Notes: generated from the sequence alone by a model not told the origin. Counted from the stretch's first letter, positions 42,601 through 64,000 are shown. The stretch is 64,000 nt of DNA from Macrostomum hystrix (GCA_950097015.1 CATNEN010000024.1:5394001-5458000), one strand, 5' to 3'. Made by a program: numbers and translations.

Positions 42601-43702
42601 TGCTAATTCGTGCATAGGGGTTTGTGAGACACACTAGCGCTTACAGGAAAATCTGGCCATTGAATATCTCGACGTTCTGAAGAACCCGCGAGCTGATTCT
42701 TGTTTCTAAAGATGCGCAACAAAAAGTTGGCCCGTGTTCTTGGGTTTCGTGTGCTTGCGTTGCTCCGCTCGGGTGCAGCACAAATAATTGTCTAGGGGAG
42801 AAATCCCCCTTGGCAGTTCTACTGTAAAGTTAGTATAAAATGTTAATTAAAGTTAAAAAATGTCTACTAACCGTATGTTACCAAGGATCCTACTGCCGGC
42901 GATGACGTCAGCGATGCCGTGAGCAGCGCCGCTTCATCCACCTCTGGCCGCGACGCGGCCTTATCTCAAGACAGCGAATTCGACAGGTTCTTTGCCCGCC
43001 AGCTGGCCGGCCTCCTCACCGACTCGCTGGCCAGATTTTGCGGTCATCGCCTTGTCGACTGCACCGAGGATATGCTGGTGGATCTCAGCGAGTTGCTTTT
43101 CAACGAGTTGGCCTTCTTTCGACTAGTCAACAATTTGGATGTCAATGGCGACGATGATGAAGGCAATGACGCGGTCGGCGATAGACAAAATAAGGCCGCC
43201 GACCGATTCGCTGCCGTTGATGATACAGACAGCGTGGCCACGGAAGAAGCGTCTGGCGTCGAGAAAGGCGAAGGCAAGGGCGAAGAAAATGATGGCGACA
43301 GCGAGGAAGATAAGGGCGATGGTGAAGATGCTAATGGCGACGGCGAGGAAGATGAGGGCGATGGCGAGGATGCTAATGGCGACGGCGAGGAAGATGAGGG
43401 CGATGGCGAAGGCTCTGATGCTGGAACAGCGTCTGCCCAGCCAGTGGACGATTATTCCGACGATTTCGAAGAGGCAGCTAACAGTAGCGACGCAGAAAAG
43501 TTGCCTAAAGTTGACCAGATGCCCGACGGACAACAGCGAGACGGCGAAGGCGAGGGCGAGACTAAACAAGTAAAAAAAGTTTAGCCCTTGTTATTTATTT
43601 CGTTTTTTTTTCACAATTGACATCTTAATAAAAAATGACTAACGTAAATTGATTTTTCAGGTTTCCATGACAACGGTTGATAAGCCGAACGGAGATGCCT
43701 AG
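39602..43702 (+). CDS. PCM1: Pericentriolar material 1 (centriolar satellite scaffold); join(39602..40198,40437..42242,42886..43569,43661..43702), ~1040 aa
   Basis: ARLQQIRHYLRQA, LRNQRDLLRRMLQ, and PCM1 C-terminal blocks FDRLRESIYSEVAAVISQNESRPHFLVELFRELQLL and FFARQLAGLLTDSLARF..DLSELLFNELAFFRL. All introns phase 0. Confidence 0.9.
40270..40345 (-). mobile_element. tRNA-like SINE head fragment (PCM1 intron 1)
   Basis: Reverse strand reads TGTAGCCTAGTGG...GAGTTCGAATC, with the same A box as family B. Confidence 0.55.
42289..42824. mobile_element. 536-bp non-autonomous DNA element, 16-bp TIR, TAA flanks (PCM1 intron)
   Basis: CAGTAGGACTACCAAG...CTTGGCAGTTCTACTG (14/16 match), with TAA on both sides. 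Two further copies in the window. Confidence 0.8.
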
Positions 43703-59167: not shown

Positions 59168-59793
59168 TTCTACACACACTATTTATCTGTTCTATTGATG
59201 CGCTCTTATCAACTTCTTTTCTATTTGCTTTAAGCCAAAACGTGTTTCAATGGTTTCTAGTGTCCATTGGTTCTGTTTAAATACAGTTAAGACTTCCTAT
59301 GGCGACTGTCTGCGACTACAACCGCTAATTATGCGGCCCAGGTGTGAGTCGGGGGCCAAGTTAACTGTCACTAGTTAGCTTAACGGTATGGTTAAACTAT
59401 CTGCCATTGCGACTTCCGGCTATGAAATTCATTTCTACGAGCATAAAGTTATGATCAGCTTTTCCTGATCATAGTAGTAATTCTACACACACTATTTATC
59501 TGTTCTATTGATGCGCTCTTATCAACTTCTTTTCTATTTGCTTTAAGCCAAAACGTGTTTCAATGGTTTCTAGTGTCCATTGGTTCTGTTTAAATACAGT
59601 TAAGACTTCCTATGGCGACTGTCTGCGACTACAACCGCTAATTATGCGGCCCAGGTGTGAGTCGGGGGCCAAGTTAACTGTCACTAGTTAGCTTAACGGT
59701 ATGGTTAAACTATCTGCCATTGCGACTTCCGGCTATGAAATTCATTTCTACGAGCATAAAGTTATGATCAGCTTTTCCTGATCATAGTAGTAA
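59168..59793. repeat. Apparently exact 313-bp tandem duplication
   Basis: 59168..59480 is repeated at 59481..59793 with no difference found by eye. Confidence 0.93.
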
Positions 59794-59898
59794 TAGAATT
59801 AGTAGTGTTGAAAACTCCATCTGTTTCTAATTTAAAGAAATTATTTCTTTAATTCTTTCCAATAAATTAACGATATTACAATGTAAAAAAAGAAAAAC

Positions 59899-60772
59899 GT
59901 GTCTACTACCTCCCCTACCTCACTGTCTACTGCTTCCGCTGTCTCCGTCTACTGCCTCCCCTTTCTCCATATCTACTGCCTCCCCTGCCTCCGTGTCTAC
60001 TGCCTCCCCTGTATCCGTGTCTACTGCCTCCCCTGTACCCGTGTCTACTGCCTCCCCTGTACCCGTGTCTACTGCCTCCCCTGTACCCGTGTCTACTGCC
60101 TCCCCTGTATCCGTATCTACTGCCTCCCCTGTACCCGTGTCTACTGCCTCCCCTGTATCCGTGTCTACTGTCTCCCCTGTACCCGTTCTACTGCCTCCCC
60201 TGTATCCGTATCTAGTGCCTCCCCTGTATCCGTGTCTACTGCCTCCCCTGTATCCGTATCTACTGTCTCCCCTGTACCCGTTCTACTGCCTCACTTGTAT
60301 CCGTATCTAGTGCCTCCCCTGTATCCGTGTCTACTGCCTCCCCTGTATCCGTGTCTACTGTCTCCCCTGTACCCGTTCTACTGCCTCCCCTGTATCCGTT
60401 CTACTGCCTCCCCTGTATCCGTGTCTACTGCCTCCCCTGTCTCCATATCTAGTGCCTCCCCTGTCTCCGTATCTAGTGCCTCCCCTGTCTCCGTGTCTAC
60501 TGCCTCCCCTGTCTCCGTATCTAGTGCCTCCCCTGTCTCCGTGTCTACTGCCTCCCCTGTCTCCGTGTCTACTGCCTCCCCTGTCTCCGTATCTAGTGCC
60601 TCCCCTGTCTCCGTATCTACTGCCTCCCCTGTCTCCGTGTCTACTGCCTCCCCTGTCTCCGTATCTAGTGCCTCCCCTGTCTCCGTGTCTACTGCCTCCC
60701 CTGTCTCCGTGTCTACTGCCTCCCCTGTCTCCGTATCTAGTGCCTCCCCTGTCTCCGTGTCTACTGCCTCCA
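59899..60772. repeat. 24-bp minisatellite (GTCTACTGCCTCCCCTGTMTCCGT), ~36 copies
   Basis: Directly visible. Confidence 0.95.
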
Positions 60773-61177: not shown

Positions 61178-63601
61178 TTACCAGCATTCCCTCACATCCA
61201 TTTGCTCGCTCGGAGGCTTGGCTTCGGCTGTGCTCTTCGGCAGCTTGATCGCTGATCGTCGGCGTCTGAAAGCCAGAGCTGCCAGTCGCATTCGGGTGAA
61301 CTTCAGCAGCAGATAGCCTGACTGCAGCAGCTCGATGACGCTAACGGCGCTCCAGCCCAGGTAGAGTCCAACCAGGCCTCCGAGGTTGCCCATGAGGCTC
61401 ATCAGGTTGTACTTGTAGCTCTCCTCGGATGCTTGCACTTTATCGGAAGCCTGACGCACCTCCAGCTTGACAAAGTTCGAGCCGATGATTCCAGAAAGCT
61501 TTGATAGAAGGCTCAGCTGTGTGATGTTGATGTCTGTGCCATTGTTGCTAATCAAGTTGTTCAGATCCACAATGTACTGGAGTCCAGCAATCCTCATTCC
61601 AGTTTGCATTTGCACTGACCGCAGCCTCACAGGAAGCATGTTGCTGACCATTGCCTGAATATTCGTCTCCAGAGGCCACTTTGTGCCAGACACCTTCACA
61701 TCATAGTAGCGCTTCTGGCACGGCTCGTAGCAGTGACTGGTCGACACGTTGACGTAATTTGTCCCTTTAAAGCACGAACTAGTGTTCTGGAATTCCGGCG
61801 TGCTTGTATTCATGCAGTTGGGCAGTCTGAATCGCTGCTCATCCATGGGCAAGGCGGGGTCGCGACAGTTGCACCTTTGCTGCAGAAAGTCCATGCGAGC
61901 TCGCAAGATGCAGTCCGTCTTGATGGCGTCATACTCTTGCCATTCGGATTTGTACTCTGCTGTTGCACTGCTGATGTTTATCGCATTGCTGACCTGTTTC
62001 ACTATATTGTAACGAACTTTCAGGCCTTCTTTTGTGCAGGGGTTCGACTCCTTGCTAATGGCAGAGTCGGTATGCTCAGTGTAGGTGAGCAAGCTGCTTT
62101 GTCCGCTGCTCACCATCACCTTGAAATCTTCGTGCAGGTAGTGCTCTGAAATTAAACAAAGAATGGACATTTTAAAAAAGGCAGAAATGCCTCGTAAACG
62201 CTGAGGAAGACAACTACGAGTATATACTCTTGCGCAATCGAGTGTTTGCTAATATTCCTTAGTCTGTGGTCAATTTCAGAAGCAGAGAGGAACACTCGCA
62301 CTAATTATGTCACCTTTGGGCTTCACATAGAGAGCCACTCCCGACGACCTGTCGAATTGAAGTTTTCCAGTGACGCTGACTGCAGACAGTGGAAACCCTT
62401 GATCGAATCTGCCATTCAGATCGCTGGAACCGATGAGGCTCTCACTGAACAGCACGAAGGTGGCGCTGGTCTCGCTGGGGTCAGGAAGAAATCTGTAGCA
62501 GTTCAGGTACAATTCGCTGTCGACTTGTTCAAAGTGAGCCTGGTTGTTGCAGTCTGTACCGTTTGACAGCTCGCAGCTGAAAAGCAGCGTCTCTGACCAG
62601 ATGCCGAATGCACGCTTCAAGAAATGTCGTCCCAGGGTGTGCATCATGGCCCAAACCATATCTTGTGTCACAGACCCTAAGCTTGCAATAGCTCCACTCA
62701 CGGTTGGATTAATGCTTGTGTTGGTTAGATTTGCACCTGAATTCACACTTGCAATAGCTCCACTCACGGTTGGATTAATGCTTGTGTTGGTTAGATTTGC
62801 ACCTGAATTCACACTTGCAATAGCTCCACTCACGGTTGGATTAATGCTTGTGTTGGTTAGATTTGCACCTGAAGTCACACTTGCGATAGCTCCACTCACG
62901 GTTGGATTAATGCTTGTATTGGTTAGATTTGCACCTGAAGTCACACTTGCAATAGCTCCACTCACGGTCGGATTAATGCTTGTGTTGGTTAGATTTGCAC
63001 CTGAAGTCACACTTGCGATAGCTCCACTCACGGTTGGATTAATGCTTGTGTTGGTTAGATTTGCACCTGAAGTCACACTTGCGATAGCTCCACTCACGGT
63101 TGGATTAATGCTTGTGTTGGTTAGATTTGCACCTGAAGTCACACTTGCGATAGCTCCACTCACTGTTGGATTAATGCTTGTGTTGGTTAGATTTGCACCT
63201 GAATTCACTGCGGTTAAAGACCTACTTTTGGGGATGTTAAGTGTTGCGAATGCGGCCTTTATATCGTTAAGCAAGCTACCCATTACAGAAGCAATGGAGT
63301 CATAACTGTGATCCATGGAGGTATAGCTAAGGGGCACGTTACTGCAAAACACCAGGTCGGGAAACTTTGCCGTCTGGTCGTTTCTACCGCTCAGCATGGT
63401 CTGGCCTTCCATGTATTCCTGCAAAGTGAGATACACCTGCACACCCGTGAAGCAAGTCAGGCCGAGGCACAGCAGGAGGCCGAAAATCTGCAGCGTCGGC
63501 GGCTTGTCCGCCATCGGCAGGTGCTCCATCAGGCCGGCTGGCGGCACCGACTCGGATGTCGACGAGGAACCAGATTGAGATTTTTCAGAGCCTTTTTCCA
63601 T
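61178..63601 (-). CDS. DEG/ENaC/ASIC-family channel subunit; two exons (63601..~62300-62315 and 62148..61178)
   Basis: TM1 (IFGLLLCLGLTCFTGVQVYLTLQEY), FPDLVFCSNVP, NCYRF, Cys-rich thumb (CNCRDP..C..CYEPC), and TM2 SLMGNLGGLVGLYLGWSAVSVIELL with GxS filter. Acceptor TTTCAG|AG is phase 1; the exact donor is ambiguous among three phase-1 GTs. Confidence 0.9.
62681..63208 (-). repeat. In-frame coding repeat, 8 x 66 bp (V[T/N]SGANLTNTSINPTVSGAIAS), in the channel ectodomain
   Basis: Directly visible; exactly 528 bp, with the ORF open on both sides. Confidence 0.95.
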
Positions 63602-64000
63602 TGCATCGGTTAGTTTGGGGGTTTCTAGAGAAAGAACGAAATCTATAGACCCATATTTTTTAAATCTCACATTATATGTATACTATTGCTAGTATTTGTG
63701 TGATTGGCTATCTGTATTTGCCATCCAGTTTAGCCATTCCGTTGAGGACAAAGCAGCTAGCTTGTATCCTTGGAGAACGATATCGGGCTTGCCTTCAAAT
63801 TAAATCAAATTGCAAGCAAACTGCGCGTCACATTTTTATGGAATTTTTAGGCAGAAAGCCTTCGTCATCTACGGCTCGTAGCAAAAATGGTAACTGAATA
63901 CGATTTTTATTCCACTTGCAATCAGCTTGATTGCTGTGAGATGACTGCTGCGATGTTGCTCTCATTCACCTCTATTTGGTATTTCCAGAGCACAATTACA

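Follow-up and report, generated by a model that had tools for sequence, protein, structure and literature searches.

A stretch of 64,000 nucleotides of the Macrostomum hystrix genome (GCA_950097015.1 CATNEN010000024.1:5394001-5458000; called the window below, with positions counted from its first letter) contains a gene of the DEG/ENaC channel family in which the coding sequence of the extracellular finger region carries a tandem array of eight 66-bp units. The array is read here as a young minisatellite that arose from finger-loop coding sequence, is kept in at least the main mRNA and is translated. The probability of this reading is put at about 0.5, a figure that includes a far less probable version in which the translated array is an adaptive antenna. 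On this reading, a 66-bp piece of finger-loop coding sequence would have been tandemly duplicated in a lineage-specific M. hystrix DEG/ENaC paralogue, producing a minisatellite confined to this locus. Its retention and translation would lengthen the protein by 8 x 22 residues, uncharged, rich in Ser, Thr and Asn and bearing 16 N-glycosylation sequons, which would form a glycan-covered stalk, either flexible or a beta-solenoid rod, at the outer top of each subunit. An effect on gating, if any, would act through the finger, as with other finger inserts. The array is regarded as a recently expanded and tolerated length variant of a hypervariable loop, in a genome with a very high rate of minisatellite formation, rather than as a demonstrated sensor.

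Tandem Repeats Finder (TRF) reports one array at 62682-63208 with a period of 66, 8.0 copies, 97% matches, 0% indels and a score of 984. Read on the minus strand, it shares a single open frame with the FPDLVFC motif upstream and the NCYRF motif downstream. Each unit encodes the 22-residue peptide V-(T/N)-SGANLTNTSINPTVSGAIAS, which contains the sequons NLT and NTS, NPT being blocked by its Pro; the array's 176 residues hold 16 N-X-S/T sequons, as against seven in the other 574 residues. Ser and Thr make up 35% of the array, Asn 15% and Pro 4.5%, and charged, aromatic and Cys residues are absent. The first-pass annotation, made from the DNA alone, had described eight near-identical in-frame units between the two motifs, two usable sequons in each and many Ser and Thr residues, and these counts are all borne out. 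Its emphasis on a frame preserved despite near identity stands less well: the frame is indeed continuous, but this carries little weight, because a 66-bp period keeps the frame automatically and any given frame is open in 39% of random 66-nt pieces of the window. The antisense frame through the array is open as well. Thus, the repeat is far beyond chance, whereas an open frame can be expected by chance. A chance frame would rarely have this composition: zero charged residues together with at least 11 Ser, Thr or Asn per 22 codons occur in 0.7% of the open 22-codon windows of the window, although this comparison is post hoc.

The repeat is unique to this gene. A search of the 220-Mb genome for a 50-nt core of the unit gives eight occurrences, all at the array locus, which rules out a dispersed element or introner. 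The assembly (220,453,370 bases in 42 contigs) is based on an inbred line sequenced with PacBio, and purging of its haplotigs (PMC10468722) leaves a single allele; the locus is present once in it, and long reads easily span the 528-bp array. Within 17 nt on one side and 4 nt on the other, the array is bordered by homology-supported coding sequence in the same frame. In our reading, these flanks contain degenerate, incomplete units, set apart by indels of 3 nt and 9 nt. A Pfam search with the array alone returned nothing above threshold, and neither did the ESM Atlas. An antisense open reading frame (ORF) at 62544-63305 was rejected as a gene for want of homology-supported flanks; its openness follows from third positions that coincide with those of the sense frame. 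Recent expansion, proposed in the first-pass annotation from the near identity of the units, agrees with the reading given here, and slippage is its simplest account, since the units are 97% identical, the array is absent from the nearest paralogues and the window yields 44 TRF rows. This is a very high minisatellite density, with many C/T-rich units bearing CTGTCTC-like motifs.

The host gene lies on the minus strand, a point the first-pass annotation had not mentioned, and comprises two exons with 751 codons, counting the array. Exon 1 in its genomic reading (62314-63601) is an ORF that begins with an ATG at 63601-63599, ends at the donor AAAG/GTGACA (a slash marks the splice junction) and encodes a short N-terminus, the first transmembrane helix (TM1), the post-TM1 motif, the finger with the array, and the NCYRF block. 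It is followed by a 168-nt GT..AG intron of phase 1 (62146-62313), with the acceptor TTTAATTTCAG followed by AG, which keeps the frame through the junction codon G+AG (Glu). Exon 2 (61178-62145, with the stop codon at 61178-61180) encodes the Cys-rich thumb and palm, the pre-TM2 segment, the second transmembrane helix (TM2) and the C-terminus. Both exons are fully open, and the family motifs and cysteines are all present. The position and phase of the intron are the same as those of intron 1 of a paralogue, P1, which supports the two-exon gene model.

Family membership rests on homology searches that, like the folding, were run exon by exon. The Pfam ASC profile (PF00858) matches exon 2 with 77.5 bits (profile positions 296-453) and exon 1 with 24.0 bits against a cut-off of 23.6 (positions 22-183); exon 1 is only just above the cut-off because the array splits the match. 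In the PDB, exon 2 matches FaNaC (7yvb, E 5.8e-6) as well as ASIC1 chains. Exon 1 alone found no match there, and a four-sequence exon-1 profile matches FaNaC 7yvb (E 6.5e-6) and human alpha-ENaC (6wth_A, E 3e-4). The gene is, by these matches, a member of the DEG/ENaC family, in agreement with the first-pass annotation, and its channel activity is predicted.

The landmarks of the family are found in order along the minus strand. TM1 corresponds to a helix in the AlphaFold2 model (63407-63499; residues 36-66 of the exon-1 translation) with a predicted local distance difference test score (pLDDT) of up to 97. The post-TM1 motif FPDLVFC (63344-63364) corresponds to the family consensus FPxVTxCN, and the NCYRF block (62489-62503) to NCYTF. 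In an alignment with 29 distant family members, P82 and C87 of the former motif, C369 of the latter, and C344 and C352 fall in nearly invariant columns. The pre-TM2 segment and TM2 (GGLVGLYLGWSAVSVIELL, 61322-61384) align residue by residue with FaNaC 7yvb, GGLVGLYLGWS standing opposite GGTLGLWMGIS, such that G-W-S (61349-61357) occupies the selectivity-filter position at which FaNaC has G-I-S; the middle Trp is unusual. At the N-terminus, which is about 35 residues long, the His of the HG gating motif is missing and an Ala precedes the nearly invariant Gly (G24). P1 is gapped at this position, and many of the distant homologues in the alignment also lack the His. No upstream exon with an HG motif was seen within 1.2 kb. 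Ending 23 nt before the ATG, a pyrimidine-rich acceptor-like site (TTCTTTCTCTAG, 63625-63641, minus strand) is plausible, from its sequence, as a spliced-leader acceptor.

The genome contains at least 71 DEG/ENaC-like matches. Two close paralogues of the array gene, P1 and P2, lie on contig 38, P1 at about 13.02 Mb (locus L031; exon 1 45% identical; Pfam ASC scores of 35.7 and 41.9 bits) and P2 at about 10.67 Mb (locus L032; about 30% identical). The finger of P1 is one continuous ORF without an array, and 35 residues of P1 correspond to 37 + 176 + 11 residues of the array gene; thus, the whole array falls in a gap. The same 176 residues are gapped against the 29 distant DEG/ENaC proteins, and they fall in the most length-variable stretch of that alignment, between the FPxVTxCN and GH...C blocks. 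At the exact profile position of the array, the profile alignment places an insert of 18 residues in FaNaC and one of about 95 residues in alpha-ENaC. An acoel DEG/ENaC protein, XP_063721483.1 of Symsagittifera roscoffensis, also has additions in the finger region: an LDLa and a CUB domain precede ASC profile position 128. In an AlphaFold2 model of the exon-1 product (31 aligned sequences, mean pLDDT 70.5), the array (residues 133-308) follows helices at 94-121 and precedes helices at 314-340 and so lies between the predicted finger helices. The placement of the array in the finger, as given in the first-pass annotation, agrees with both this model and the alpha-ENaC insert, and the array site is, as judged from these alignments, a finger-loop insertion hot spot of the family.

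No closer relative was found in the protein libraries. Word-index searches with the exon-1 ORF and with exon 2 found no match at E <= 0.001, although repeat words possibly overwhelmed the exon-1 search and full-length relatives may have been missed owing to length limits. A HMMER search of 1.84 billion representatives with exon 2 gave a best match at E 2.6e-9 with 27% identity, and M. lignano PAA48052 is 25% identical. These results point to a lineage-specific subfamily. Its gene structures differ: the array gene has one intron, P1 (L031:4395-7011) two and P2 (L032:2601-7897) at least four, and intron positions common to P1 and P2 are absent from the array gene, which indicates recent intron loss or gain within this small subfamily.

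Evidence that the array is coding comes from the variation among its units and from its paralogues. Five columns vary among the units, of which four are synonymous third positions and one is an N/T replacement. The bias towards synonymous sites has a P of 0.006 to 0.009 if a sixth column, at the junction, is included (5/6) and of about 0.02 by our own binomial for 4/5. An identical synonymous count is obtained for the antisense frame with common third positions, which, however, lacks coding flanks. P1 and P2 read through the array-equivalent position without an intron, P2 having one about 33 residues upstream; therefore, any intron at the array must be new. We roughly estimate that only about 4% of unrelated introns would keep the frame and be open throughout. 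The array likely arose inside coding sequence, given its frame, the multiple-of-3 indels in its flanks, the synonymous bias and the intron-free paralogues. For retention of the array in the present-day mRNA the chances are roughly even.

A number of observations weigh against translation. Two of the five variable sites are at CpG, and the third-position bias may thus be partly mutational. The codon-usage score of the unit favours neither side, lying at the 11th percentile of coding windows and in the top 23% of open non-coding frames. The recognition value of the array in the ESM Atlas is low (755), and no orthologue or transcript-derived copy was found among the 1.84 billion representatives searched with exon 2. 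In addition, each unit contains ACC/GTGAGT. In 37 DEG/ENaC coding ORFs (41.5 kb, drawn from loci L007-L048), GTRAGT was observed three times as against 8.7 expected from codon shuffles (p 0.02), and at least one of the three, that of P1, is a real donor that is read through. Given this depletion, an exon of this genome would not normally contain eight perfect donor hexamers within 528 nt. On the sense strand of these ORFs as a whole, GTRAGT is about three-fold depleted and CAGGTG is enriched (36 observed, 15 expected). The depletion suggests strong selection against donor-like hexamers in the exons of this short-intron genome.

The GTGAGT in every unit also counts in favour of a rival explanation, in which splicing takes the array out of the mRNA as an in-frame intron or exitron and leaves an ordinary 568-residue channel. 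The candidate intron (62677-63225, minus strand; 549 nt, or 3 x 183) brackets the array exactly, with the donor AAAA/GTAGGT (GT at 63225-63224) and the acceptor CTTAG/GG (AG at 62678-62677), both in phase 1 and joined through the codon AGG. Its removal would give a product collinear with P1, in which the conserved blocks are, by our count, 39 residues apart as against 35 in P1. Paralogue L011 has the same putative donor hexamer, GTAGGT; L011, L015 and L022 have putative TAG acceptors, with intron gaps of 78 to 870 nt. Moreover, intron presence differs among the array gene, P1 and P2, and new introns are documented to arise when exon sequence is tandemly duplicated (PMC3265369, PMC4974935). The candidate intron is perhaps an exonic repeat that was intronised after its expansion; variants using the phase-1 TTCAG/ acceptors inside the array would keep some units. 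However, with no intron at this position in P1 or P2, a new gain is required, and both the low frequency expected of an unrelated intron that is in frame and open and the synonymous bias among the units speak against it. The eight internal GTGAGT donors are stronger than the proposed donor and would compete with it, splicing from them being frameshifting (31+66k nt). Its acceptor has a poor pyrimidine tract, with an AAG 5 nt upstream. Removal of the array is a serious possibility but, on balance, a doubtful one.

Splicing between neighbouring units can be considered separately. Intron gain is known from the tandem duplication of exon sequence containing AGGT (PMC3265369, PMC4974935). The array resembles these cases in that each unit has CAG/GT, and inter-copy splicing would remove whole units in frame; it differs in having eight copies rather than two and in the weakness of its donor. 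CAG/GTGCAA, noted as weak in the first-pass annotation, lacks the A at +4 and the G at +5 and is indeed weaker than every donor inferred in the paralogues. Since, in addition, CAGGTG is not avoided in exons, unit-by-unit splicing from this donor is unlikely to be efficient.

A further caution comes from non-coding minisatellites of this genome. A 15-bp minisatellite of 29 copies lies in an intron of another DEG/ENaC gene (L017:1107-1544; contig 38, about 5.588 Mb). Its open frame continues in phase into the ASC exon that follows, a reading-frame illusion that also counts against taking the array at face value. The two are alike in being multiple-of-3 repeats that can mimic an ORF in a genome of very high minisatellite density. 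The array differs from such repeats in its long, compositionally complex and genome-unique unit, its coding flanks and its synonymous-biased variation. Among the 37 coding ORFs, only short runs of 3- to 12-bp units occur inside ASC-matching sequence.

The internal donors also underlie the explanation that the array is a slightly harmful recent accident in a family of more than 70 genes, its gene copy decaying because transcripts are mis-spliced with frameshifts or barely expressed. If a GTGAGT were joined to the TTCAG/ of a later unit, 31+66k nt would be lost and the frame shifted, and there are stops in both of the other frames of the unit; the exons of this genome avoid GTRAGT. The size of the family suggests redundancy, the assembly comes from an inbred line (PMC10468722), the HG motif lacks its His, and no transcript-derived protein of the array gene or of its two close paralogues was found among the 1.84 billion representatives, an absence that may only reflect the species' data not being included. 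Against decay, both exons are fully open over 751 codons with every family motif and cysteine in place, and the position and phase of the intron are conserved with P1. Such a decaying copy is unlikely, more clearly so than removal of the array by splicing.

If the array is retained and translated, as the preferred reading holds, the insert would, from its position in the predicted protein, be extracellular and open to N-glycosylation, and would extend from the finger, which tunes the gating of ENaC, ASIC and FaNaC. Its fold may be regular: AlphaFold2 predicts three strands per unit with a 22-residue period and a pLDDT of 70-87 in the array. Foldseek matches this part to pentapeptide-repeat proteins, designed solenoids and a family 3 pectate lyase, with E of about 1e-3 and low TM-scores. 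However, the fold of the array was effectively predicted from a single sequence of perfect repeats, and AlphaFold2 over-predicts solenoids on such repeats, a further point that counts against the preferred reading; a beta-solenoid is for this reason only a possibility. The description of the insert as mucin-like in the first-pass annotation fits only loosely: Ser plus Thr amount to 35% but Pro to no more than 4.5%, and the model predicts a regular beta-solenoid instead of disorder.

A stronger version of the preferred reading treats the translated array as an adaptive glycan-rich antenna or tether that links the finger to mucus, matrix or flow and is tunable by copy number. The array would be extracellular and has 16 sequons, and gating in DEG/ENaC channels is controlled by the finger. 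The excess of synonymous variation is a hint that the peptide is under constraint. N-glycans of ENaC are needed for shear responses, and added sequons can enhance these responses (PMC6955349, PMC7958617). The first-pass annotation thus drew on a correctly sourced precedent, but the asparagines involved are in the palm and knuckle and not in the finger (PMC6955349). The array is also very young and absent from the closest paralogues, no orthologue was found that would show its retention, Pro is low for a mucin domain, and the high minisatellite rate of the genome accounts for the array without selection. An adaptive antenna is therefore quite improbable, even more so than decay of the gene. The fully specified form, in which a translated, N-glycosylated rod or stalk on the finger of each subunit serves as a copy-number-tunable tether that couples mucus, matrix or flow to gating in a mechanosensory antenna, is speculation and marginally less probable again.

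Known finger inserts offer a closer comparison. The alpha and gamma subunits of ENaC carry a GRIP domain with an inhibitory tract, which, like the array, is an extracellular insert after the first finger helix, and the insert of about 95 residues in alpha-ENaC is at the same profile position as the array. The ENaC finger insert is glycosylated and tunes gating, a function that is established, whereas a corresponding role of the array would be hypothetical. The ENaC insert is a conserved beta structure of unique sequence with protease sites, whereas the array is a tandem repeat. In this connection, the basic motif IPKSRS is found just before the array (63209-63235, minus strand), and P1 has GPRKGS at the matching place (L031, about 4700). 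Both are in the finger loop where ENaC subunits carry protease sites, possibly by coincidence. The S. roscoffensis protein belongs to the same host family and has its insertion in the same region, which shows that the site tolerates large additions; its LDLa and CUB domains belong to known Cys-rich families, whereas the array is young, cysteine-free and of low complexity, and has no Pfam match above threshold.

Coding variable-number tandem repeats are found in other cell-surface glycoproteins, such as the macroglycopeptide of platelet GPIb-alpha, MUC1 and the yeast FLO adhesins. The array is similar to these in being an in-frame minisatellite that would encode a Ser/Thr-rich, glycosylated extracellular spacer, the length of which could vary between alleles. 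They are Pro-rich and mainly O-glycosylated, with documented polymorphism, whereas the array has little Pro, N-linked sequons and an ion channel as host, and is seen in one assembly.

A full-text literature search gave no paper that joins degenerin, finger domain and tandem repeats. The family is known to have finger inserts; one that is tandemly repeated and sequon-rich is not described in the literature searched, and would be new provided that it is translated. In that case the gene would encode a DEG/ENaC subunit with a repeat-encoded, heavily N-glycosylated extension on the gating-relevant finger, and would be a natural test case for extracellular glycans that tether channels to their surroundings. 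If the array is instead spliced out, the locus would show a tandem duplication within an exon that became an intron only very recently, and would bear on the origin of introns. For now, it is a curiosity in a genome with a high minisatellite rate and more than 70 DEG/ENaC genes.

Other repeats of the window were also observed. Just 3' of the channel gene, a 313-bp segment is tandemly duplicated with 100% identity and adjoins a 24-bp array of about 37 copies (59168-59794 and 59898-60771). Further away, a 42-bp repeat at 43279-43411 encodes, in one frame, an acidic Gly/Asp/Glu-rich peptide with a coding-like codon score (0.25), and is possibly a genuine coding repeat of another gene.

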